NCBI GenBank assembly: GCA_043228905.1
Contig: JBHGNT010000013.1
Span: 11,656,001-11,720,000, forward strand
Length of the DNA stretch: 64,000 nucleotides
Source of the DNA: Azolla caroliniana
Lineage: Eukaryota > Plantae > Polypodiophyta
Reading direction: 5' to 3'
Numbering within the stretch: the first letter of the stretch is position 1; each line of letters starts with the position of its first letter. The position numbers and the translations under genes were made by a program. The notes beneath the pieces were generated by a model. That model saw nothing but the letters and a program-made list of their open reading frames with translations. It had not been told where the DNA came from and did no database searches. Positions 3,350 through 64,000 of the stretch are shown one piece after another.

Positions 3350-4685
3350 ATTATCGTCTTTGGAGGTCAAATATGACCAATGAGACCAAAAATATTACAT
3401 TTCACGTGATACGTGTGAAAGTGAGTAGTGACTATTGATGTTCAAGAACTTTACCAATGAATGTTGCAATTGAGATTGCACACTATGGTTGTAAGAGGGA
3501 TTTATGCAAGGATTGGGCTCAGTCGAAGAGATGCAGAAAGCATGGTCGAATATGATCAATGGCAGAGCATTGTATCAAAGTGTGATACTCAGACTCGCAA
3601 ACTTATTTAGGGAAAACTGTGCATAGCCGACCACTCTCATCACTTGTGCCCCAACGCCCTATCTCACATCGCAATGCATGTGAGCTAAGTTGCATGGAAG
3701 CAATGGTTCGAATGGCACATAATAGTATGGGCTCTAACATGTATCGATGTGTACGATTTCCCCGCTCCGCAAAGAATATGGTTTTGTATTAGGTGCAACA
3801 CGTGTAGTATAATGTGAGAAGCGTGAGCCTCCACATTTGTCCCATGTCATGATATATTGGCGTTGCAAAAAGGCCTCATTTACAGAGGAATCTAATGATG
3901 CATCATCATGAAGCAAGTGTCTCACATCCCATCTACCAAACCATTTTTCTATATCATGCATCCAACCGGAACACAAAATTTTGGATCTTTTTGCTTGCTT
4001 CCCACGCAATTCTAGGAAGTCGATGTGAGGGACTTTTTTGAACCTTAAGCATGTATTCAACAACCCTTTCCATGGCCATGATCTCAATTGGAAGCAATCC
4101 CGTCTCAAGGAGGAGGAGGGTGTAGAGCGTTTGTTTCTTAACTTGTAGAAACTTTGTAAGAAAATGTTTTTGGACATTTTCAAACTCTTTCCACATAGAT
4201 TTAGGGATGCTACCACCCCATACTTCCACCCCATAGAGAAGAACCAGTGTCACCAAAGTTTCGAAAAGATATTTCTTGAGGACCCAACACTTAATATCTC
4301 CAAGATTGCATGTGTTCTCAAATGAATAGTATGCTCGTTTACCCGCCTCTAAGCGGCGTGTAGCACATTCATTCCATCTATGATTTGAAGGAACTTCAAG
4401 GCCAAGATATTTGAAGCTTTCCACACATTCAAGTGGCTCATTGTTGTACATAATGCATGGTTTATCTCTTTTTTGGCACTTCACAATCATAATCTTCGTT
4501 TTAGAGCTATTGACACTTAATTTAGTATGCATGCAAATGTTTTCCAATGCCTTCATAAGCTTTTGTACATCTCCTAAATTATTTGCAAAAAGCACTACAT
4601 CATCTGCATATAGCAAAAGCATAATCACAACATTCCCAATGACAACTTCTTCAACACATTCTTCCTTTGCAAACTTGGTAACCAT
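3315..4685 (-). mobile_element. 5'-truncated non-LTR retrotransposon (LINE): RT plus C-terminal Cys/His region
   Basis: ORF 3954-4685 has LLYADD and FKYLG RT motifs. A broken frame downstream reads SHALRCEIGRW..RLC..ESEYH..C. A (TC)n tract lies near the 3' end. Confidence 0.85.
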
Positions 4686-25000: not shown

Positions 25001-26334
25001 ATTTACCAATAAGTAAACATATAACTAAATTATGCACAATCTACATATAGCTACCAATCCAAACACCATAGTAATGTCATTGCATGCATAGGAACAATAA
25101 ATAATGACACTCAATAGACCTCATTCTTCTTTTAAAAAAATTCAAGAAATGAACACCAACCTCAAGGAGGAAAATCATACACGAGTAAATAACCAATATT
25201 TAAAAAGTAAAAAGAATGATAAGAAAGATGAAGATCTAGATCATGATGCTAATGTGTGGGTGTGTGTAAAATAACTCTAAAGTCACATAAAGAACCTATT
25301 TCCAAAGGACTTTCAAGGTCTAGACGACAAATTCATGGTGTACAAAATAGTACGCCTCCCGTTATGGTGAAGAATCCAACAAAACAAGAACGCTCTGGGT
25401 TCGGAAAATGGCACACAAAGCCTATAGAAGACATAACCAACATATGAACGTCACATCTTTGAAACAGTAGCAAAGACAAGGCAAAGGCGAAAGTTTGCAT
25501 GAGGCATGTTTACGAGGATCGGCTACCTAATTTATGACAATAATAAAAATGTGTGGGGAAGAAGAAACAACAAGTGTTTCCCATGCGGGGAGGGGTCGAA
25601 ATGTACATGAAAGGTTTTTTTGAAAGGGGGAGGAGCGAGTTTCTCATGCTTTTATTTTGTTATCATTGCTTGCAAGCACTCACTTATTATGGTTTCGGCA
25701 ATCGGGATCTATTGGTTTTTAAACACGAGAGGCAATTAGGCATTTTTATACATGTGGGAAACAGCTCTCTCACGTTCTGTTCTTTTCCATCTCGCGTACC
25801 TCCCACCATCCAATGTTAGGAACAATTAAGAGGCATCATGCCAATGACCAGCCGAGATACCGAGCACTTTTATTTATCGCGAGGAGGAGCGAGGGCCAAC
25901 AACAAACAAAGGTTGCGTGGAGACAATAAAATACATGTAGCAAGCTATATCGGCTGGCCGAGGACGGAGGAGGAGGAGGGGGCTTTAGGCCGTCCACAGG
26001 ATCAGATTCGATAAGCCGATCAGTTCGGGGTGGACAGAAGGATCAGTTGTGGGACTTGTAACATTGGCCCGTTCGTGTTCGTGTCAGGGGCATGACCGGA
26101 CAGGCGTGCGGAAGATGGATGGATATGTGGGTCCTCATCAGGTGCGAAGTGCTTCTCGACCCCCATAGAGAGACATACACACGCACACATGACCATGGAC
26201 ATGGATGGACACACATGACCAGAGGACCGGTTGACCGTGCGTGAGCATGACCATGACCATGACCGGGATGAGTGATGTAAGTACATAAAGAGATGGGAAA
26301 TGAGCAAGCAGAGCATGGATGGAAGGGAAGAGTT

Positions 26335-27933
26335 TTAAGGGCGGTTGCACATGAAGTGCTGGTAGACACGGCAGCGGAAGACTTTGCGGTGGGCGTGGGA
26401 GACGAAGCCGGGCATAACCATGAACTCGACGGTGGGGACGGCGGTGACGGAGCAGCGCGCGCAGCTGCCGATGGGCGGCACCGCCACCGGCTCCACGTAG
26501 AGCGGGTCCACGGGCTGGCCCCTCCCCACCCTCACGATGGTGGCCGGCGGGTTGGTCGCCGCTGCCAGCCGGTGCAGCAGGAAGGCCCATTTGGCCGCCC
26601 TCAGGAACGAGTCCATGAACCGGTCCCTCTGCGCCGCCGAGCGGAAGGCCAGCGCCGCCTCCGGCAGCAGCGCCAGCACCTCCTCGCTCTTCGCCGCCGC
26701 GTACGCGTGGAACGCCGCCTCGTACGTCGCCGAGTGCGCCCGCAGCGCCTCCGCCGGTTCCACCGCCTTCATCCGCACGTACTCCTGCAGCCGCGCCGCC
26801 GCCCTCGCCGCCGCGTCGAAGATGTGCGTCAGCCCGCTGTCGTCGAAGCTGTCGTTCTCGAAGCACCGGAACAGGGCGCTGTTGATCCGCGCCTCCAGGG
26901 CATAGCTGGCATGCACCCTGCGCAGGAAGATCGTGCTCGGCTCCATCTCCATCAGCGTGTTGATCAGCGAGTAGCCCGCCCTCACGATCTGCTGCATGTA
27001 TATCCTGCAGAAGATGTTGATCTCCCAGCGGCACCGCAGCAGCGCCGCCCCGAACATCATGGCCAGGCGATCCGCTGCCTCCGTCTCGATCGGAGGTGGA
27101 GGTGGAGATGGAGACACTCTCGGGGAAGCAGCAGACTTCCAGGAGTCCTCATCATCCCCCTCTCGATTGACTTGCTTGCCAGATTTTAACGGCGGTGGGA
27201 GCGCTTTTAGGTCTGCTGAATCGGTGGCCATGGCGCTCATCCGTTCCACCATTTCGTGTTCTTGCATCGCAACGGCCTGCTGCTGCTCCATGAGCCATTC
27301 CCACATGTCGCTAGTGTCCTGCGACTCCATGAGAGCTTCCTGCTGTGCCTTGGCTTGCTCCAGGAGCTCAGCGGCACCGAGGCCACTGAGGCGCGGGAGC
27401 GATGTCGCCCCTACCACAGATTCCTTGGTCTTGGACCAGCAAGTAAATATACCTGTGATGAGCCCGATCGCGCTCCGCCGCTTCGCATACATGACATGGT
27501 CGCCGCCGCCGTGTAAAGAAGACAGCGCCACTGTGTGGCACTGAGATGAGGCGATGCTGCCCAATGTCTGGATGGTGGCTCGAGGAGGAGGAGCACGGAC
27601 ATGGCTCATACCTCCGTCGCTGGCCGAGCGGCTCATGTGTTTGGACGCAGAGGTACTGGCGATGGCGTTTGCTAGGGGAAGCGAAGAAGGCGCGCGGCGC
27701 GCGGCGGAGGTCGCAGTGGTGCCATCGCGACGCCATCTGTCAGGGCCAGGGCCAGGGCCAGGGCCAGACTTGGCGGCGAGGAGGACCTCACGGGCGGCGA
27801 GATCAAGGTGCTGGTGGAAGCTACGGGGAGGGCTGCGGGGGCCGCCGCCTTTGCCATAGCTGTGCACGTGAATGGACTGATGATCCGAGGGGGCGTCAGG
27901 ATCGTGGCGGCGGGATGGTCTGTGCGCCGCCAT
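26335..27933 (-). CDS. GIL1/IRK-interacting protein (IRKI)-like plant protein, intronless
   Basis: 532-aa GC-rich ORF. C-terminal motifs ALEA..LF..FEND.F, FLRAAK.AFLLH.LA, I.RV..G..DP.Y.E, VEFMVMPGF..CRVY. CT-rich 5' leader. Confidence 0.8.
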   Translation of the reverse strand: MAAHRPSRRHDPDAPSDHQSIHVHSYGKGGGPRSPPRSFHQHLDLAAREVLLAAKSGPGPGPGPDRWRRDGTTATSAARRAPSSLPLANAIASTSASKHMSRSASDGGMSHVRAPPPRATIQTLGSIASSQCHTVALSSLHGGGDHVMYAKRRSAIGLITGIFTCWSKTKESVVGATSLPRLSGLGAAELLEQAKAQQEALMESQDTSDMWEWLMEQQQAVAMQEHEMVERMSAMATDSADLKALPPPLKSGKQVNREGDDEDSWKSAASPRVSPSPPPPPIETEAADRLAMMFGAALLRCRWEINIFCRIYMQQIVRAGYSLINTLMEMEPSTIFLRRVHASYALEARINSALFRCFENDSFDDSGLTHIFDAAARAAARLQEYVRMKAVEPAEALRAHSATYEAAFHAYAAAKSEEVLALLPEAALAFRSAAQRDRFMDSFLRAAKWAFLLHRLAAATNPPATIVRVGRGQPVDPLYVEPVAVPPIGSCARCSVTAVPTVEFMVMPGFVSHAHRKVFRCRVYQHFMCNRP

Positions 27934-28324
27934 GTAAATGGCGCAATGGCGGGGCGAGAGATATGGATGGATGAGAGTGAGAAGCGCCGGGACACACAGA
28001 AGAGGAGGGGGGGAGGAGGGTAGATCAGATTAGCTAAAAGGCTATAAAAGCTGTATAGGCTGTATGTAGCAGCTGCTGCTAGTTTGGGGGGCGGCGGAAA
28101 GAGATGATGAGTGAGGAGGAAGAGGAGGAGGAGGAGGATGTTTGTTGGTTAAGAAGGAAGAAGAAATAAGGAAGAAGAAGAGAGACAAAGACACAGAAAG
28201 AGAGAGAGAGAGAGAGAGATGGACACGGTCATTATGATGGGACAAGACGAGACTGGATTGGACGGGACGGGACGGGACCGACTGGAAAGAGAGAGAGAAG
28301 AAGAAAAAGGAACCAAAACGAAGG

Positions 28325-53330: not shown

Positions 53331-53992
53331 TGTCGTAGTGTATTCCACACACTACGTGGAAAACCATAAAATAATATATCCGATTTTAGATACATATAAA
53401 TAGATAAATAAAATATAAAAGAATTTATCACGTGCATAGGGCAAGATTCAAACCATGCACCTCCATGTAGATAAACCCCAACTTTACCATTGTATTAACT
53501 TATCTTTAGTGTTATAAATATAGATTTAATACATATAAGACCTTTATTTACACATACCTTTATTAAAAGGTAAAAATCATGTATTCTTTAGAGTGTGAAT
53601 ATTTTATTTACACGTGCCATTAAAAGTGACTCATGCACATCTAGCGTGTGTGAAAGTGTTTTTTGAATTCAAACCATTGAACACTAGATGGATATAAAGT
53701 ATGGATAATTCACATTTGGAGGATAAGAACACGAACTAAGACCTTAGGGAAGAAGTCAAAAGTAAAAGTACGAGACCAAGAGAAAAGTAAAAAGAGAAAA
53801 CGCAGACTATAAAAAACAGTAAAAATAGAATGGTCATAACTCCCTCGTTGTTTATCCAAATATCACGTTTAAATATGGATTAGAAAGCTTGTAAAAAGAG
53901 CTTTCTATAGCTTTTTAAATCGCTTAATTTGGATATCGGATGAGGGAGATATGACGATTAGAAGGTCGATGTGTCATAGCTAAAAATAGGGA
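53331..53992 (+). mobile_element. Probable LTR (starts TGTCGTAG), split by the DNA transposon and resuming at ~63298-63553
   Basis: TG start exactly where the previous LTR homology breaks. A TATA-like TTATAAAAG lies in the resumed part. The continuity is inferred. Confidence 0.5.
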
Positions 53993-54350
53993 AACACGTT
54001 CGCGTTCACAAGTGGAAGGATCGCGCATAAATGGAAGGATAAGGGAAATTTTAGGGGTTTTTCAATGATTTTACAAAACACATTGATACCAGTATCATAC
54101 AAGTTCAAACATACTATGAAAAAGGTTAAAAATCCACTATTTTCGTGATTTAGAAGTAACTAAAAAAAGACGAATTTCAAAAACATACATTCTCAATTTA
54201 TATCACAAACTTTACAACCAATGTTATTTTATAAGAAACGATTTTTGGGAAATCATAAGAATTCAAAACACATGATTTTATATTACTCGATTTGTTACAA
54301 GCGGAATGTAGTTACACTTAATAGCCAAATATACATTCATGATCACTCCT

Positions 54351-57131
54351 TTACGGAGAATCACTACTATAACTAATATACAATGACGATTCCTCCTCAT
54401 CATCCTCGGATGTACCAATCAGTGCATTATCTTCGTCATAAACCAAATGGTTTGACTCTAGATTATATGTAGCAGATCTCGTTTGCCTTTGACTCGAGCC
54501 ACCTTGTAGACCTGGTAATTTTTCTTTTATTATATCTATTGTTGACTTCCTTAATCGTCCGGCTTTTGTAAGTGTGAAGTCGTACACGATGATATCCACA
54601 TCAGAGATATCAAGGGTCGAGGTGTTACGAATGTTTCGCTTCCTCTTCCTACCTCCCCTTCTTGTTTGGCATTCAATCATCTCCAATGTATACTTACCTG
54701 TAAAAGCATTTGCACTTCTAGTGTTGTACCAATGAACATTTATAGACTTGATCGTGTTATCTATTTCATGCATTAGCACTTCTAGAATTTTACCAACCCA
54801 AAATTGGTGGCCATGTGAGTTCTCATCAGCCGGCGTTGCAATCAACATCCCCGCGGTGAGCTCTTGCAAATTTCCTTGCCATCTAGCTTCGGCTGCTTTG
54901 GTCATCCTTGGTCCCACATAAATGTCTCTTTGTTGTGGATGGACCAAGCTGTCATTAATCGCATTTACTAGTCGCTCCGGACTTCTATTTACGCGATCAT
55001 GTTGCAGCGACCATGTGAATGGCGTTTCCAAATTCCAATTATCAACAGATACACAATTGTCTATAATTTCTTTCTGATCACTATAAAATACATCCCACCA
55101 TGACGTGTCTTGTTGTGCGGCATATTTCTTGGCGGCCTCAATATGTTTTCTTTTTTCTTCTAAGGCTTGGAGCCATGACCGTTTTTGTTCTAATACTAAG
55201 TCGCTCTGCAACTGTCCTTTCTTCTCAATTGGCATTTGCTTAGCTCCATGGACAATTGTACTCGGCATACAAAGTAATAACTGGCAACCACCTTCAGGTT
55301 CCCATGTTGTAGAAGATGAATATTGTTTAGCATACAAAAGTGTAGAACCACTTATTCCATTTTTCTTTATCAAAAAAATGTGATTGAAACTTATATTGTT
55401 TAACTGAGCAAGCACTTTAACATTCCCACCACCTCCATCTAATATATATCTCTTAAAGTCATATACCTCCTTCAAGTGTAACACTTTTGGGCGTGGTGTA
55501 TATGCATCACAAATGACATCAAATAGTTTAGGTAAAGTGAAAGCATCATGCCGAGACAACTGTCTGGAGAATGTGCTAAACATCTGATCTATATGGTCAT
55601 GTGTGTGGCCAACCAAAAGGAAATTGACTTTCACTTTCCTAAACAATTCTAGGTTGACCAACATACTTAGATAGCCAAATACAGTTGAATTTTTGTTCTC
55701 TCTAGCAGTATTATCCAATTGAATGTATAGAACAGGGGGGAAAGGTTGTCCCCAAGACATCAAAACTCGGTGAATCACTGTAACTGTTAGGTTAGGGTCA
55801 TTGTGAACATTGGGGTAAGTAATGAAGACGTGAGGTCGAACAGACCTATTATAAGCCAAGCATCCCACCAAGTGCATTTGAACAAGGCACTCATCATTGA
55901 CATCTTTGGGGAGCCTCCGCATATGCGGCAAGCATGTCTTCTTCTGGTCCATGCCATCTATCATTAAGCACATGTATTGTTCAGGCCTCTTCAAACACTT
56001 CTCTCTATGATGCATCGCCTTCCTTCGTTCTAAGGATTGTGCCTCGCGATGCTCTTGTAGTAACTTCTTACTCGTATCCTTTTCCATTGATGTCTTTGCA
56101 CCTTTAGCCAAACTTTTAAGATTTGCACAAATGGAGCAATAACCCATACGTACTTTACGAGGAATAATAACATTTGAAAACCGAGCTCTCCATAATCTTG
56201 TGAATTGGCTATAGGTGATAGACTTATTACGTGAGCCCAGCATTTCAGATCGATAGACATCATAAACTTCCCGACGGGTATAATTATCAGAAAGATGCAT
56301 CCTACCTGTAGTGGGCATTACTTCACAATTTAACTGAAAGTAAGTTTTCATCCAGCCAATAGCTAGTCTTCCAATTGCACCTTTCATACTTGGAACCTCT
56401 TTACAATTGAGCATCTGATCCCCGCTAAGTAGACGTTGTTGTACTCTATGTAGCCGCATGTTACTAACACATAACACAATTTTGAATGCAACTCTACATA
56501 TCTGTTGCGCATGGAAGATATAATACTCGAATGATACTTTGATCCCCGTACATTTGTCAGATACTAGTTGCATATGTGATCCGAGGTAAGTGTCTTGCTC
56601 ATCACCGGTCATCGAAAAATAGTATCGCCTTAATTCTCGCAACTTTGATTTTCCAATCATAGACATACAACCACGGGCACAACATATTTTGTTGACATCA
56701 AATCCAATCTGTTTATCTGATGTCACCAAGCTAAATCTAGCCAGACGAATTCTTCGTGGGATTCTTCTAATATGCATAGGGCTCCCAGATTTCTCTTCCT
56801 GCATAGAGGTTGGTGTAACCTTGTTACAGTCTAATTCTCTGTTCTGACCATCGCCAATGTTATTCAATGTTTCCTGGGCACTTCCTTCATTCCCGGTATC
56901 TTTATTAATATCGTATTCTTCAATAGAGAACTCTTCACATGTGTCATTATTTGCATTCCCTGTAGATGAGCTCAGACAATATTCTTCGATAGAATATGGT
57001 GAGTCGGTCGAAAGACAATATTCTTCAATCGAATATGGTGACTCTGTTGATAAACAATACTCTTCAGTAGAAAACGATGTGTCTGATGACAAACAATATT
57101 CTTCAATCGAGAACGGTGAATCTTCACTCAT
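54351..57131 (-). CDS. Putative DDD transposase (Sola1-like), 926 aa
   Basis: Intact ORF inside the TIRs. Acidic triad-like motifs CLMIDGMD, LYIQLDNTARENKN and FLLVGHTHDHID, with upstream Cys/His clusters (CCARGC, CSIC..H). Confidence 0.75.
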   Translation of the reverse strand: MSEDSPFSIEEYCLSSDTSFSTEEYCLSTESPYSIEEYCLSTDSPYSIEEYCLSSSTGNANNDTCEEFSIEEYDINKDTGNEGSAQETLNNIGDGQNRELDCNKVTPTSMQEEKSGSPMHIRRIPRRIRLARFSLVTSDKQIGFDVNKICCARGCMSMIGKSKLRELRRYYFSMTGDEQDTYLGSHMQLVSDKCTGIKVSFEYYIFHAQQICRVAFKIVLCVSNMRLHRVQQRLLSGDQMLNCKEVPSMKGAIGRLAIGWMKTYFQLNCEVMPTTGRMHLSDNYTRREVYDVYRSEMLGSRNKSITYSQFTRLWRARFSNVIIPRKVRMGYCSICANLKSLAKGAKTSMEKDTSKKLLQEHREAQSLERRKAMHHREKCLKRPEQYMCLMIDGMDQKKTCLPHMRRLPKDVNDECLVQMHLVGCLAYNRSVRPHVFITYPNVHNDPNLTVTVIHRVLMSWGQPFPPVLYIQLDNTARENKNSTVFGYLSMLVNLELFRKVKVNFLLVGHTHDHIDQMFSTFSRQLSRHDAFTLPKLFDVICDAYTPRPKVLHLKEVYDFKRYILDGGGGNVKVLAQLNNISFNHIFLIKKNGISGSTLLYAKQYSSSTTWEPEGGCQLLLCMPSTIVHGAKQMPIEKKGQLQSDLVLEQKRSWLQALEEKRKHIEAAKKYAAQQDTSWWDVFYSDQKEIIDNCVSVDNWNLETPFTWSLQHDRVNRSPERLVNAINDSLVHPQQRDIYVGPRMTKAAEARWQGNLQELTAGMLIATPADENSHGHQFWVGKILEVLMHEIDNTIKSINVHWYNTRSANAFTGKYTLEMIECQTRRGGRKRKRNIRNTSTLDISDVDIIVYDFTLTKAGRLRKSTIDIIKEKLPGLQGGSSQRQTRSATYNLESNHLVYDEDNALIGTSEDDEEESSLYISYSSDSP

Positions 57132-57767
57132 GGCTTAAGGTCTAGATAGGGCTCTCTAAGTTATACTCCTCTCTAACCATATACTCCTCCCTAAACATAA
57201 ACTTCTCTCTAAACAAAAGCCAAATCAATAGAATGTCTATATTATGTAATATTCTATTAAAATACAATACATCTAAAAATTATTTTTAATAAAGTAATTT
57301 AACTTAAATTATCAATCATTATATAAACGAGATCTAAATGATGTTAAATCAAGTAAAATATAAAACTAATCATTAACAAGCCTTGAATATGTTGGATTAA
57401 TGTTAAAATCATTGGCTAATTAATGACACCCATTTTGATATAGAACGTCTCACTCATTGATTCTTTAAGGCTCACCATTTTAATTATTAGACTTATCAAT
57501 CATTGAGAGTCATAAAAGTTTTTGCTTTTAGTAATCAATCATTGGTACATTCATGAACCTCTATCATTGTCTCCTTCATAACCTTTGAAGTGATTGTAGG
57601 TTGTTATGAGTATAAAAGATTGATCAATATATTAGTTTGACTTTGTAATCATTAATACAATCATAAGTTACTATAGTTAATGTGACTATGGTTACAAACT
57701 AACTATCCTCAAAGTTACCAACATTGGTTAAGATGACTATGGTTACTTTAACCATGGGTTCAATCCC

Positions 57768-57775
57768 TATAAATA
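57768..57775 (+). promoter_or_regulatory. TATA box of the methyltransferase gene
   Basis: CCCTATAAATAGG lies ~160 bp upstream of the ATG at 57927 and is followed by a 9-bp-repeat leader. Confidence 0.6.
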
Positions 57776-57801
57776 GGAAGACCTCATCATATTTCACTCA
57801 C

Positions 57802-57873
57802 CAGAGCGTACAGAGCGTACAGAGCACTCAGAGCACACAGAGCACACAGAGCACACAGAGCACACAGAGCACT
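57802..57873 (+). repeat. 8 x 9-bp tandem repeat (CAGAGCACA consensus) in the predicted 5' UTR
   Basis: Read directly from the sequence. Confidence 0.85.
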
Positions 57874-57926
57874 CAAGGCACAAAGCACGAAAGCGCGATC
57901 TCCGCCTCCACACAAAACGATCAACC

Positions 57927-60900
57927 ATGTCTTCCAAGAGAGTCGAGCGCGAGGAGTCCAGGTAGGCCTCTGACACTGTGGACATTTTTGTAAATATGTT
58001 TCGTTTCCCGAAAAACTCGATACGGCGTATCGAGTTCATGTATACAATACAAATATTTAAACACGAACTCGATACGGCGTATCGAGTTCGTGTGTAAATA
58101 ATTGTATTGTATACACGAACTCGATACGCCGTATCGAGTTCGTGTTTAAAGTATAGGTTTTAAACACGAACTCGATACGGCGTATCGAGTTCGTGTTTAA
58201 AACCTATAATTTAAACACGAACTCGATACGGCGTATCGAGTTCGTGTTTAAAACGTATACTTTAAACACGAACTCGATACGGCGTATCGAGTTCGTGGTT
58301 AAAACTTACCTTTTAAACACGAACTCGATACGGCGTATCGAGTTCGTGTTTAAAACTTACCTTTTAAACACGAACTCGATACGCCGTATCGAGTTCGTGT
58401 TTAAAGTATAGGTTTTAAACATGAACTCGATACGGCGTATCGAGTTCGTGTTTAAAAGGTTTAGTGTTAAACACGAACTCGATACGGCGTATCGAGTTCG
58501 TGTTTAAAACCTATACTTTAAACACGAACTCGATACGGCGTATCGAGTTCGTGTTTAAAGTATAGGTTTTAAACACGAACTCGATACGGCGTATCGAGTT
58601 CGTGTTTAAAGTGTAGCCTTTGAGAGAGAAAAATCGTTTAAGGGGTGGAAATGTTATCAAATTGTCTGTCAAAATCAGTCTTTTTATGTTGAGTTTACTT
58701 ACTTCTAAACAAATACAAGCTCTAATTATAGGTGATTTTTGACCTACTTTGGCTTAAAATAGTAGAAAATGATCTACAAATTGCATTCACTATGGCAAAT
58801 TCTCATCAATATAGGTTTAGAATCTATATAAGTCATATCTACTATTTAAAAGAATATATAACCCGTTTTACTTATTACGATATATATTTTCTAGGTTGAA
58901 TAGCCATGCCTACAATAGATTTTTGAATATGTTACTGCTCCTAGAAACTGTTCTTCATTATAATAACAACTTCAATCTACGTAACTGTCTAACTTATGTT
59001 TTTGCATATACTTTCTTAAATAGGTCGTTTGAGAATCTGTCAGACCGACCCGTGAAGAAAATTAAGCTTCGCATACAAGGTTCTCCAATCGAAGCCCAGA
59101 CCAAGGTAACTCCGGAGTCCATAAAGAGAGGAAAAAAGCTTCTATTTAACGAAGAGACAAAATCTCAGCCCCATAGTGATGTAAGCCAAAAGAAAATTGT
59201 CGCCGCTACTGGAGGCGAAGACCTTCCTGACCGAGATCTAACGGACAAGGAATGGTGTATGCAATATATCGACTCAAAGAAAAAAGTCGTATTGTATACA
59301 GCAAAGAAGAAGGGTGAGGGGCAGCTAGGAAAAGAAACTCCATTTATGTATGGCCGAATTCTACGATTTGACTACGAAGATGCAGATTCGGCCAACATAC
59401 TGGTAATGATAGAGTGCTCCAAGGGGGTACGCAAAGTGTTCCTTTCAGAAGACCTTTTAGTAAAGGAATCTTGTGGGCCTGAAGTGTTCAAAAAAGCACT
59501 TGATAACTCACAAAACCTGATTGTTACCTTGAGGCCTTATATACAAGGCCATGTAACTCTACGAGATGAAGAGCCCTCCCACTTGAAGGCCACTAAAAAG
59601 GTATCCAAAGTCCAGTCAAGACCAGCCAAGAAGAAGACAACGAAAATGTCGGATACGGATTCGACAAGTGACAATGAAGAAGAGGATAATAAGGGGACGC
59701 CAGGAGCCGAGCTGGCCTCGGGTGTTTTGTCATCCGAGCAGAATAAAATAAGAAGAGAGTTAATGCAACGGAAGCTGGTCAGGAAAGGCCAAGTATTTAA
59801 TTTGCCTATAACACACATCCATCGGCCCCCTATTGATGAAAAAACAGGTCGAAGACCACTTGAGATTAGAGAGCCTCATCGCATGCATGTTCAAAATCTC
59901 AAGAAAAAAATGAAAATTAATCCTCATGCCACAGTGGTGCCTTTTATTGTTATGGTGGATCCTGAAGAATGTGAAACCATTGAAGATTTTGATATCAGAA
60001 AGCATGATCAATATAATTATTTTGTCATTGGTGGATCGCATTCAGCAGAGGCACGTCGACAACTTGTCAGAGAACATCCAACCACTTTCTTCTTCAAGTA
60101 TGCCGAGTGCAAAATATATGTTGGGCTCACAACCGAAGAGGCTAAACTGTTGGCATGGGACCATAATAATGATAATGACTATAGGCAGAAAATGTCGTCT
60201 ATTGAGCGAATCCGGTTCTTCCACCACGAGTATTTAGATGTGAAACAAAAGTTTGGTGTGAAGTTACATCCAGGCCTTCGACGTCAATGTCTTCATGAAG
60301 TCGGCATTGTGGTAGATGATAATGTTAGGTCCGATGGTCTTCGAAAGTATGAATCTTGGTTTCAATTGGCGTTTAGAGATGGAGAAGTATGGGACCTCCA
60401 AGATCAAATCTTCTCAATGTGGGAGAATAAGGAGGTAAAGGGTCAACGACAAAAGAAATGTAGGGTTGACCCTCAACTAGAAATAAAGTCACAAGCCGCC
60501 AAGAGAATTGACTTGACAATTGAAGAAGCGGCAGACGACATGAAGCTGTCTCTATGGAGAGCGATGCAAGGTATTAAGGACGAGTACTCTGCGTTGATAC
60601 CACTGCCAAGGGTTGTGGCGAAAGATTTAAGCCTTGAAGAAATGGTCACCGAGTTCAATAAGTAAGTCTTTCAAATACTGAAATTGTAGTCTATCTGGTG
60701 TAATTCAAAGTTCTAATCTTGATTTCTAATTTTACAGTCATAAGGTGTACATGAAGATCCAAGAAGTAATGATGAAACAACTTGGATGTATAACTTGGGA
60801 ACAAGTGACCGAGGATTATCCTCTAACGTCTTCGTATAAGGCGTTATCAGAGTATTTTATTGCATTCAAGGATTGGGTTAGTATTGATATTTTTTCATTA

Positions 60901-62249
60901 CCCTTTCATCATATGTAGAGGTTGCGTAATAATACCTGATGTCCTATTGCTTCTATTAGAAACCGTGTCGAGGCAAGAAACAAGGAGAAGTTAAGGATAT
61001 ACACGATTTCCCTACATCCTTCCTTGCACATCTCGAGCGAGCTAGAAAAGAAAAGGATCGTCGCTTAGTCAAGGCGTACGAAATGGAGGAAGATGGCTCG
61101 TTTAAAAAATTTAGCCACAAGAAAGATATAACGAGAGATCTTTACTACAATGTGGTTTGCGGTGATGTCATCGACTTGATCCAGAAGGTGCCAAAGAAGG
61201 AATATACGCTAATGATTGAGGATATTCCTTACGGATTTCGAATGGCTGGGTCATCATACGACGATGAACCGTTTAGGTTTAAACAATTGGAGAAGATGGT
61301 CAAGGATTTCGCTGAGCTAACGACCGCATCCTTGTGGCGAATAGTTGTCTTTCATAGTATGGACCAAGGGTACTCGGTAGCTCAAGCTTTGAGATCTCGT
61401 TGCCATGGCATCGAGAACCTTGCATGGTAAGGATTATTTATAGGTGTCTTTCATTATATTGCAATTCTTAAGGTTGTTGAATCTATTTTTAACTCGATGA
61501 ATTATTTTTTATAGGATCAAGACCAATGTAAATAGAGGGCCAACTTTTCGGTTCGTTAATGCCATTGAATACATAACGGTTGGCTACTTCGATGAAATTA
61601 AAAAACAGAGAATCAAAGAGCATTCTAATGAAGTGGGAGGTTCAAATCTGTTGGTATATCCAGCAGTGACTCGGAAATTGCGACATGTCACCACGACAGA
61701 ACGGGGACTTGTCAACCCATACCAAAAACCTCAACGACTTATGATGCGCTTGATCGAGATGTTTTCTGTCGAAGGAGACTGGATATTAGATCTCTTTTCT
61801 GGCACAGGTATTCCTCGAACTAGGGTAACGATCTTGAGATAACCAATCCCTTTTTTTTCGTTTGACAACTAAATCTTCTTGTTACTTACATCACAGGAAC
61901 TACGTCAGCATGTGCATTGAAGCTGTTTAGGAATACAGTTGCATTGGAGAAGGACGAGGACCAAGTTATATTTATTAATATGCGGATTAAGGCTTTGTGG
62001 GAGTGCCCAGACCAGGATGAGGAGGTCGGTGCAAAGAACCTCGCCAATACAGAAAGGTTTCAACCCGCTTCGCGAGAGCCTATTCCTCCGTTAGCCGGCG
62101 AACCGGGAGAGCTAATAGAGCTTGATGATGAGCTTATAGAAGATATTTCGTTGGCCCGGCTAACAGGGGAAACCAATGCACGTATAGCCGAAGACAGTTC
62201 TACACAAGATGATGAAGAAAATGACGTAGATGAATTGATTGCTATGTAA
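57927..62249 (+). CDS. ParB-like domain plus beta-class N6-adenine/N4-cytosine DNA methyltransferase, 6 exons, 974 aa
   Basis: Exons 57927-57961, 59024-60661, 60738-60876, 60960-61426, 61515-61807, 61897-62249. All introns are GT-AG, phases are consistent, total 2925 nt with no internal stops. Motifs: CGD..LMIEDIPYG (IV), W.K..EYI, PYQKP..L..RLIEMFS.EGD.ILDLFSGTGTT..A (X/I). Confidence 0.85.
58014..58610. repeat. Array of 12 palindromes TTTAAACACGAACTCGATACG-[G/C]-CGTATCGAGTTCGTGTTTAAA, period 51-52 bp
   Basis: Centres at 58025, 58077, 58129, 58180, 58231, 58282, 58333, 58384, 58435, 58487, 58538 and 58589. Confidence 0.95.
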
Positions 62250-63553
62250 TAGACTCTATAAAGAATATGACACTGACGATTTGTTAAGATTTCACATTAT
62301 TAATACAAATTTTGGGTTTTACCTAGTGGATTCTATTCTTTATAATCATCTATATGTTTCAATTTTATTTTTATATACCTCATTAGTAGATTTATGATAT
62401 TGGTTTCACCGCGTGCATAGCTGACTACCAAACTTATGGAGAAACATGAACTAGCTTAAAAGGAGGCTGATTTTGGTCCAAGCTAACCTTAACAGAACAT
62501 GGCCCTATAATTATTGCCATGACTGTCCATGTTGTTATTATGGATCTTTGTCTTATATTGTTAAAACAGGTCTAGTTTCTATTCCATTGCTGCTTAGATT
62601 GTGTAGTGTCTTGATAATGGTTCCAGTTGCGTTATCGTTCGGAGTTTGATCTTGTGTGAATCACCTAAGCAATAGAGTAGATCAATTTTAAATATAGGTA
62701 TGAAAGCCTAATAGGTTTGTTATTTCCACGACATTATCCTAAAGTTCACTGCCTTACATTGTGCACAATTATATACACATATGGTTTGATCCCATATGAA
62801 CAAACTGAGGAATAGATTAGATCAACTTTTAATATAAGTATTGAATACTTTAATAAGTTAGTTATTCCAATCACTTATCCTAATGTGCACTATCCTACAT
62901 TTTCGACAATTACATACATGCACGTATGGGTCAAAGTATAAATTATATCTCATTTTATTAGTATGGATACAAGTACACCTCATAATTTTGTAAAACCTAC
63001 CTAATTAATATAAGTCTTTAAGTTAGTGTTTCCCTTGTCGCACAATAGTGCCATATTGAGCCATAGTTGAACTTTATTTAGATACATTAACTTATCAACA
63101 TGTCTAAACTTGCATGATTTCTAATGATCTCCACTCGTAGATCTATCATGTATTTTTATATTTGCAAATTCTTATCAAGTTGAGGAACATGTGATACTAG
63201 TGCATCCAATTATTGTAGAGAGGGTGTATTTGCTTCGTTTTAAGAAGATTCTACAAGTGGAATGCGCAATCCTTCCACTTGTGAACGCGAACGTGTTGGG
63301 AGATAAAAACCTTCTAAAAATAGCATGAACGTGGATAAGAAGAGGAAGGTTATAAAAGAAGAAGTGATATTAGTGAGGAGGGAGGCTAAGAGTGAAGGCC
63401 AAAGAGTGGATGAGGAGTGTTAGGAAGAAGTGTCTTTGTGGAAGAGGAAGTGTCTTAGAAGAGGAAGGTCTTTGGTTTTAGTTCAATGTGGAGTTTGTCT
63501 CCTTTGTATTCTCTTGATGTTGGAATATCAGAACATTCTTATTTCTTGCTCGC

Positions 63554-63686
63554 TGTCAGGAACTCTATTAAGGCAGAGAAGGAATTAGTACTAAAAGAAG
63601 GATTAGTACTATTGTTGGGGAATAGTACTAAGACAGAGAAGGATTAGTACTATGAGAGGTGTCGAACTTTGAGAGAAGGAATGAGT

Positions 63687-63744
<58 letters not shown>

Positions 63745-64000
63745 TGATGCGAAAGATATATGTATTATATGACGGAAGATATACAACAGTAGTTAGAAGG
63801 CTTAAGACTGGCGTTGAACCGATTTGGTTCGAACTAATGCCTTGCGCCTCCTTTTATAGTGTCTTCAGGAATACTCCTGAAGTTTCTAGAATGTTCCAGA
63901 GAAATCTGGAATATACATCAATTTCCTAATAAAACCTAAATGAAAATAATATCCTTCAAATTACAACTCATAACCTAATGGTAAAGTCTCGACCCGTGTA
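63554..64000 (-). mobile_element. Gypsy LTR related to 1247-1592, running off the window end
   Basis: TGTCAGG terminus and shared GAATTAGTACTAAA, (GA)n and GCTTAAGACTGGC.TTGAACCG blocks. Confidence 0.75.

Follow-up and report, generated by a model that had tools for sequence, protein, structure and literature searches.

An intact transposon of Azolla caroliniana carries a gene for a putative DNA methyltransferase joined to a ParB-like domain

A prokaryote-type DNA methyltransferase gene interrupted by introns in a fern raises two questions, namely whose gene it is and whether an enzyme with the catalytic motif D-I-P-Y could still transfer methyl groups to DNA. Such a gene was originally predicted at 60960-62249 of a stretch of 64,000 nucleotides from Azolla caroliniana (the window). 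Functional N6-methyladenine (6mA) or N4-methylcytosine (4mC) in land-plant DNA is still disputed, and to our knowledge no land-plant enzyme for either mark is known besides the sperm-specific 4mC enzymes of Marchantia. Judged by its sequence, the window gene adds a land-plant member to a class of transposon accessory genes that has been recognised only recently, and its non-canonical motif IV is found throughout its clade.

The transposon and its six-exon gene

The region 53993-63297 is an intact transposon with terminal inverted repeats (TIRs), 9305 bp from TIR to TIR, and the ParB-like/methyltransferase gene is its cargo (Table 1). The DUF7869 transposase on the minus strand and the ParB-methyltransferase gene on the plus strand are divergently arranged between the same TIRs. 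PF25273 (DUF7869) was the sole Pfam match of the transposase ORF, and nothing relevant on DUF7869 was found in the literature. A target duplication of 4 bp would be compatible with Sola1 and Sola2 elements, which serves as a lead only. The same gene pair, again on opposite strands, recurs in eight other loci, among them L001, L003, L005, L007, L008, L010 and L011, and in L011 the ParB-methyltransferase is encoded beside DUF7869 by a single intronless ORF of 789 aa. Because of the TIRs, the GGGA duplication and this recurring pair, the gene is regarded as transposon cargo and not as a host gene. The original prediction of a horizontally acquired gene with introns thus stands as to the prokaryote-type enzyme and the conserved introns, but not as to an isolated host gene, against which speak the 36-bp TIRs, GGGA, DUF7869 and the multi-copy family.

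Table 1. Coordinates of the transposon features in the window
Feature	Position	Strand	Evidence
Target-site duplication GGGA, left copy	53989..53992		read from sequence
Left terminal inverted repeat, 36 bp	53993..54028		35/36 bases match reverse complement of 63262-63297
Transposase ORF, 926 aa	54351..57131	-	Pfam PF25273 DUF7869, E 1.8e-51
Inferred exon 1 (ATG + 11 codons + AG), 35 nt	57927..57961	+	sequence; L010 counterpart
Inferred intron 1, holds palindrome array	57962-59023	+	L010 donor/acceptor phase
Palindrome array, twelve ~51-bp units, one 23-bp palindrome (core TCGATAC) per unit	58014..58624		inside inferred intron 1
Exon 2, N-terminal region with ParB/Srx-like domain at 59799-60236	59024..60661	+	open frame; 30 homologues
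Exon 3 (linker)	60738..60876	+	conserved in seven loci; junctions match annotated Ceratopteris model P0017
Exon 4, methyltransferase first half, motif IV D-I-P-Y at 61221-61232	60960..61426	+	open frame; relatives aligned
Exon 5, target-recognition region, NPYQKP, start of motif I (DLFSGT)	61515..61807	+	PF01555
Exon 6, end of motif I (G-TT), acidic residue of motif II (ALEKD), acidic tail, stop 62247-62249	61897..62249	+	intronless relatives
Four downstream introns, all GT..AG	60662-60737, 60877-60959, 61427-61514, 61808-61896	+	sequence
Right terminal inverted repeat, 36 bp	63262..63297		pairs with 53993-54028
Target-site duplication GGGA, right copy	63298..63301		read from sequence

The gene runs from 57927 to 62249 in six exons, and by exon arithmetic its 2925 nt of exon correspond to about 974 codons. 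The 60960-62249 interval correctly holds the methyltransferase exons 4-6, but it is the 3' half of this longer gene and not a gene standing alone. A TATA-like box, TATAAATA, lies at 57769-57776 upstream of the inferred exon 1, and L010 likewise has a 35-nt exon (encoding MSSK...) followed by a GTAGG donor, with the acceptor in equal phase. Short tandem repeats of 9 bp and 18 bp (CAGAGCACA-like) were seen at 57793-57885, downstream of this box and ahead of the inferred start codon, and L001 has a similar repeat in the equivalent position (3567-3668).

The intervals 60960-61427, 61516-61806 and 61899-62249 translate as open frames. The last bases of exon 5, GAT CTC TTT TCT GGC ACA G, adjoin GT, exon 6 opens with GA ACT ACG directly after AG, and the split codon is GGA, so that GT-AG splicing from 61807 to 61897 gives DLFSGT-G-TTSACA, which is the motif I that had been expected from this junction. 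Intronless relatives (P0103, P0110, P0123 and P0162) run without a break across the 61807/61897 junction, and the first two junctions of the annotated Ceratopteris model agree with those of the window gene. In seven diverged copies all four downstream introns occupy the same codon positions and keep GT and AG, while their lengths range between 68 and 110 nt (with a single one of ~420 nt), stops occur in every frame and the intron sequences cannot be aligned. The comparison strongly argues that the introns are real, conserved and of the spliceosomal type, in agreement with the original prediction. No run recorded as RNA contained the stretch, and two possible RNA runs had none of it, which is no evidence of silence. 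One DNA-like run contained 23% of the sampled words; since its contigs are unspliced and read through introns 1, 2 and 4, this run was considered to be DNA.

Several further features were observed in and around the element. Four 39-bp tandem repeats at 56937-57123, in the 5' coding part of the transposase on the minus strand, encode a repeated 13-residue peptide near the N-terminus. Positions 3-83 of L007 encode 27 residues equal to exon 3 of the window gene, for which the main copy of L007 is only 65% identical; a second, closer element copy thus seems to abut the main one. A GA microsatellite (63671-63756) lies immediately beyond the right end of the element. Far from it, a GC-rich island (0.63 vs ~0.38 around) at 26001-28000 of the window contains long overlapping ORFs on both strands (26138-27933).

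Identity of the methyltransferase domain and its motif IV

Exon 5 alone matched PF01555 (N6_N4_Mtase) in Pfam with 31.0 bits (E 3.2e-7; gathering score 26.7), as the original prediction had anticipated, and the PF01555 scores of relatives reached 65.7 bits. Exons 4 and 6, searched singly, gave no Pfam or PDB match. In per-exon searches of solved structures by single sequence and by profile, exon 5 found RsrI, MboIIA, DpnA and CcrM below the threshold (E 0.17-1.6). Because these searches gave sub-threshold matches at best, contiguous natural relatives were used, so that the whole-domain profile and fold evidence comes from the relatives' sequences, and the window's own gene was searched exon by exon. 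On Ginkgo Gb_37443, exons 4, 5 and 6 line up one behind the other with residues 350-446, 448-546 and 548-666, with E values of 5e-23, 2.5e-20 and 1.5e-12, respectively.

A profile of the domains of nine contiguous relatives (intronless or annotated) matched the solved N6-adenine enzymes M1.HpyAVI/DpnA (5.9e-15), CcrM (5.4e-12), MboIIA (1.1e-11), M.BceJIV (3e-11) and RsrI (1e-9), and more weakly the N4 enzymes rotifer N4CMT (3.7e-6) and PvuII (8.5e-4). The predicted structure of the Ginkgo domain (P0061:345-600; pLDDT 79, pTM 0.80) has a beta-class Rossmann-like fold and matched CcrM first (E 4.7e-16, TM 0.71), then RsrI, MboIIA and M.BceJIV. The motifs follow the permuted beta order of IV-VIII, target-recognition region, X and I-III: exon 4 carries motif IV, exon 5 has NPYQKP and DLFSGT, and exon 6 has G-TT and LEKD; motif IV had been correctly placed before motif I. 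The SAM-binding positions are present, motif I as F-x-G-x-G across the junction and the acidic residue of motif II as an invariant E in LEKD. These matches support the assignment of the domain, already predicted as such, to the prokaryote-type, beta-order DNA amino-methyltransferases (PF01555) and not to the C5 enzymes.

Motif IV is encoded by GAT ATT CCT TAC and reads D-I-P-Y, as had been reported. It departs from the canonical (D/N/S)-P-P-(Y/F/W) in having I in place of the first P, and retains the D, the second P and the Y. In the nine-relative profile the D-x-P-Y-G of the relatives aligns on the D-P-P-Y of CcrM, MboIIA and M.BceJIV, and in the predicted structure of the Ginkgo domain motif IV lies at the end of strand 28-34. 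The exon 4 profile was searched against 1.84 billion representatives and found only 165 proteins at E ≤ 0.001, of which 118 could be scored at motif IV. DIPY was read in 53 of these 118 representatives, followed by DIPH, DAPY, DVPY, NIPY, DLPR and DFPY with 5-8 each, and DPPY in none. D-[IAVFL]-P-[YH] is the hallmark of the whole streptophyte clade and DIPY no local oddity. We know of no characterised enzyme with D-I-P-Y. The window gene has E just before the motif (61218-61220, IEDIPY) where the seven other aligned copies have A (IADIPY); its other invariant residues are intact.

The ParB-like domain, the palindrome array and the family

The residues encoded at 59799-60236 gave an AlphaFold model (pLDDT 81) with a ParB/sulfiredoxin-like fold. 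The first 45 Foldseek matches of the model were nearly all ParB, Srx, PadC, Noc, KorB and SbnI (best E 1.3e-3, TM 0.51). At the sequence level the similarity to ParB is weak, with no ParBc Pfam match, the only signals being DUF6551 (E 0.0026-0.09) and sulfiredoxin (E ~1). Membership of the N-terminal domain in the ParB/Srx superfamily is supported by the modelled fold. Both domains lie within one uninterrupted ORF in P0162.

Besides the array in the inferred intron 1 of the window gene, arrays with a period of 51 bp are found at the equivalent place in L001 (4503-4640) and L008 (4165-4854), with the common core TCGAT(A/G)C, while L010 (3857-3999) has a 72-bp repeat only, with palindrome arms as in the other arrays. 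The outer arms of the palindromes differ between element lineages and the core is common to them, a pattern that would fit co-evolution with a binding protein.

When the upstream 589-aa ORF was used as query, about 30 homologues were found, including Ceratopteris and Ginkgo gene models, and the contigs encoding them carry all five coding blocks in unchanged order. Named members of the family come from Chara braunii, the liverwort Riccia, the lycophyte Diphasiastrum, the ferns Adiantum and Ceratopteris, and Ginkgo, with at least 12 gene models in Chara alone; all the named members that the searches returned are streptophytes. Eight copies with only 51-88% identity over exon 4 share DIPYGFR without change, and NPYQKPQRL, DLFS-T, TT-ACALK and LEKD are likewise invariant across copies. 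The exons of the window gene encode protein that is 87-96% identical to that of L004, but no alignment of their introns is possible. The comparisons of the window gene with L004 and L010 gave a pN/pS of 0.04-0.09 with a pS of 0.70-0.85; these are raw ratios, the Jukes-Cantor dS being not computable because synonymous sites are saturated. From these ratios the gene is evidently under strong purifying selection.

Degenerate copies also exist. In L002 (12122-13232; Ceratopteris richardii MU262555.1) each of exons 4, 5 and 6 contains a frameshift, exon 5 with a stop in addition, and the annotated Ceratopteris protein KP509_1Z236600 stops at the first break of this decayed copy. Public gene models of the family are often partial; in Ginkgo, the model Gb_10123 (P0029) skips the motif IV exon, and Gb_37443 (P0061) has it, with DIPH. 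The relatives P0103, P0110 and P0123 (416-446 aa, on contigs of ~2-4.6 kb) consist of an uninterrupted methyltransferase domain and acidic tail without the ParB-like part, and in one subgroup of them D-L-P-R replaces D-I-P-Y.

In a word-indexed search, the methyltransferase region of Ginkgo retrieved only Ginkgo paralogues and a few weak prokaryotic matches. One of the latter, P0188, was rejected as a relative; it sits in a bacterial SNF2/Fic/ResIII island. The intronless P0162 as query retrieved Chara paralogues only, and no Ectocarpus or other algal protein. Using tblastn against 50,697 phage records, P0162 gave 301 weak matches (24-29% identity among the matches listed, E 1e-5 to 1e-3) to its methyltransferase part only, and no match to the ParB-methyltransferase fusion. 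Since these matches are weak, confined to the methyltransferase part and without the fusion, a phage donor is not shown. No paper on the ParB-methyltransferase family in land plants was found in the literature, nor a relevant one on ferns with PF01555.

Possible function and relation to known systems

We consider it fairly probable that the six-exon fusion of a ParB/Srx-like domain and a beta-class DNA amino-methyltransferase is an accessory gene of the intact 9.3-kb TIR transposon, whose product is active, directed to the element itself and likelier specific for N6. The enzyme would retain its activity, the ParB-like domain could conceivably direct it to the phased array of palindromes within intron 1 of the same element, and element DNA would be modified, at adenine N6 more likely than at cytosine N4. 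Methylation might then mark the transposon, which could serve to regulate its own transposition or expression, or to evade silencing by the host. Any mark written would more likely serve a function of the transposon than one of the plant genome. Adenine N6 is preferred over cytosine N4 because motif IV has D, P-x-Q-K-P is present as in RsrI and CcrM, and N6 enzymes outrank N4 enzymes in the searches. More tentative is the wider proposal of a transposon lineage, known from stoneworts, ferns and Ginkgo among others, in which a ParB-like clamp would settle on the phased palindromes of the element that encodes it and an active D-hydrophobic-P-Y methyltransferase would write 6mA (or 4mC) on that element.

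An active enzyme might instead write 4mC, as Marchantia MpDN4MT1 and rotifer N4CMT do. Both specificities exist among beta-class enzymes, PvuII and N4CMT were also significant in the fold and profile searches, and the palindrome core is CG-rich (TCGATACGGCGTATCGA). This product is possible but doubtful, for motif IV begins with D and not with S, the motif of MpDN4MT1 being TSPPY (Marchantia paper). Moreover, P-x-Q-K-P precedes motif I as in RsrI, CcrM, M1.HpyAVI and M.BceJIV, and every N6-adenine enzyme ranked above the N4 enzymes in both the profile and the fold searches.

It would be a different matter if the change from DPPY to D-I-P-Y had abolished methyl transfer and left the domain to serve only for the binding of SAM or DNA within a transposon accessory protein. 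The lack of DPPY among the scored clade representatives and the failure of exon 4 alone to be recognised in Pfam and PDB searches would agree with such a loss, and inactive paralogues of related enzymes have altered motif IV, e.g. METTL14 with EPPL. We nevertheless regard it as unlikely. The catalytic D, the aromatic Y/H, motif I, the acidic residue of motif II and NPYQKP are all kept under a pN/pS of 0.04-0.09, and a pseudoenzyme is not expected to retain all SAM-binding and catalytic positions across synonymous-saturated divergence. In addition, the first proline of DPPY contributes its main-chain carbonyl, and isoleucine supplies one too.

That the gene belongs to the host, having been domesticated after a single horizontal transfer to write a non-canonical mark genome-wide, is highly improbable. 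Old and conserved introns, strong selection and a family spread across streptophytes would suit a host gene, but the window copy is flanked by 36-bp TIRs and a 4-bp target duplication and adjoins an intact transposase, the transposase/methyltransferase pair is found in many diverged copies and species (Chara with at least 12 gene models), and degenerate copies occur (L002). A substrate of RNA or protein is the least probable alternative: METTL3-METTL14 is among the fold matches (E ~1e-8), but DNA enzymes match far better, the fusion partner has a predicted DNA-binding ParB fold and an array of DNA palindromes travels with the gene.

On the preferred reading of a self-targeting accessory methyltransferase, the family provides a well-conserved candidate writer, which occurs in ferns, a lycophyte, liverworts and Ginkgo and is the transposon's and not the host's. 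The candidate targeting domain and the candidate target array share one element, which allows concrete experiments, and the clade is defined by a catalytic motif outside the DPPY/SPPY rule. Were this reading true, land plants would have a transposon-autonomous epigenetic mark in the form of self-targeting methylation.

The ParB-methyltransferase architecture was described in 2025 from an Ectocarpus Sola1 element as well as from red and green algae (PMC12477816; bioRxiv 10.1101/2025.02.11.637652), and this algal class of transposon accessory proteins is now extended to land plants. Sola1-1_Ec32 of Ectocarpus encodes, on the strand opposite to the transposase, a 1104-aa protein with ParB-like and N4/N6 DNA methyltransferase domains (Dinatale et al. 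2025, PMC12477816), and its authors proposed that the accessory protein binds and modifies its own element. Here too a ParB-like domain is followed by a methyltransferase in one long protein (~974 aa) encoded opposite to the transposase, a likeness of architecture as described; the Ectocarpus element is 21.5 kb long and from a brown alga, whereas the present one measures 9.3 kb and is from a land plant. Red-algal Plavaka elements with PAG2 and PAG3 also carry PF01555 and ParB-like domains, with inverted-repeat tandem arrays beside the ParB gene (Petroll et al. 2025, bioRxiv 10.1101/2025.02.11.637652). The combination of a PF01555 methyltransferase, a ParB-like domain and palindromic arrays near the ParB gene is common to both systems, but in the EnSpm/Plavaka elements the domains occur in two genes, as methyltransferase-SET and ParB-2OG oxygenase, and in the DUF7869 element in one protein.

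With the bacterial enzymes M1.HpyAVI/DpnA, CcrM, MboIIA, RsrI and M.BceJIV, the domain shares the fold, the order IV...X-I-II-III, P-x-Q-K-P, F-x-G-x-G-T and the D and Y of motif IV. The identity is ~17-22%, however, and the bacterial motif is D-P-P-Y where the fern gene has D-I-P-Y. The bacterial enzymes act in restriction-modification or the cell cycle, whereas the fern domain belongs to transposon cargo with introns, a ParB-like fusion and an acidic tail. MpDN4MT1a/b and N4CMT are likewise PF01555 beta-class enzymes of bacterial origin that gained introns in a eukaryote; unlike the DIPY gene, they have (T)SPPY, are host genes, and their extra domains are absent (Marchantia) or other. With its TSPPY, MpDN4MT1 is accordingly placed in a different clade. 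In the profile search, the similarity to the solved N4CMT fell nine orders of magnitude below that to N6-adenine enzymes.

A fusion of a chlorophyte-type Dam with a ParB-type HTH has been described, for which ancestry from a phage ParB-terminase locus was proposed (Iyer et al. 2016, PMC4738411). It resembles the present fusion in joining a ParB-related module to a DNA adenine methyltransferase in green-lineage eukaryotes, but its methyltransferase is of the EcoKI/TaqI-like group 2 and the one described here of the PF01555 beta class. Because the methyltransferase groups differ, the two fusions appear to be independent.
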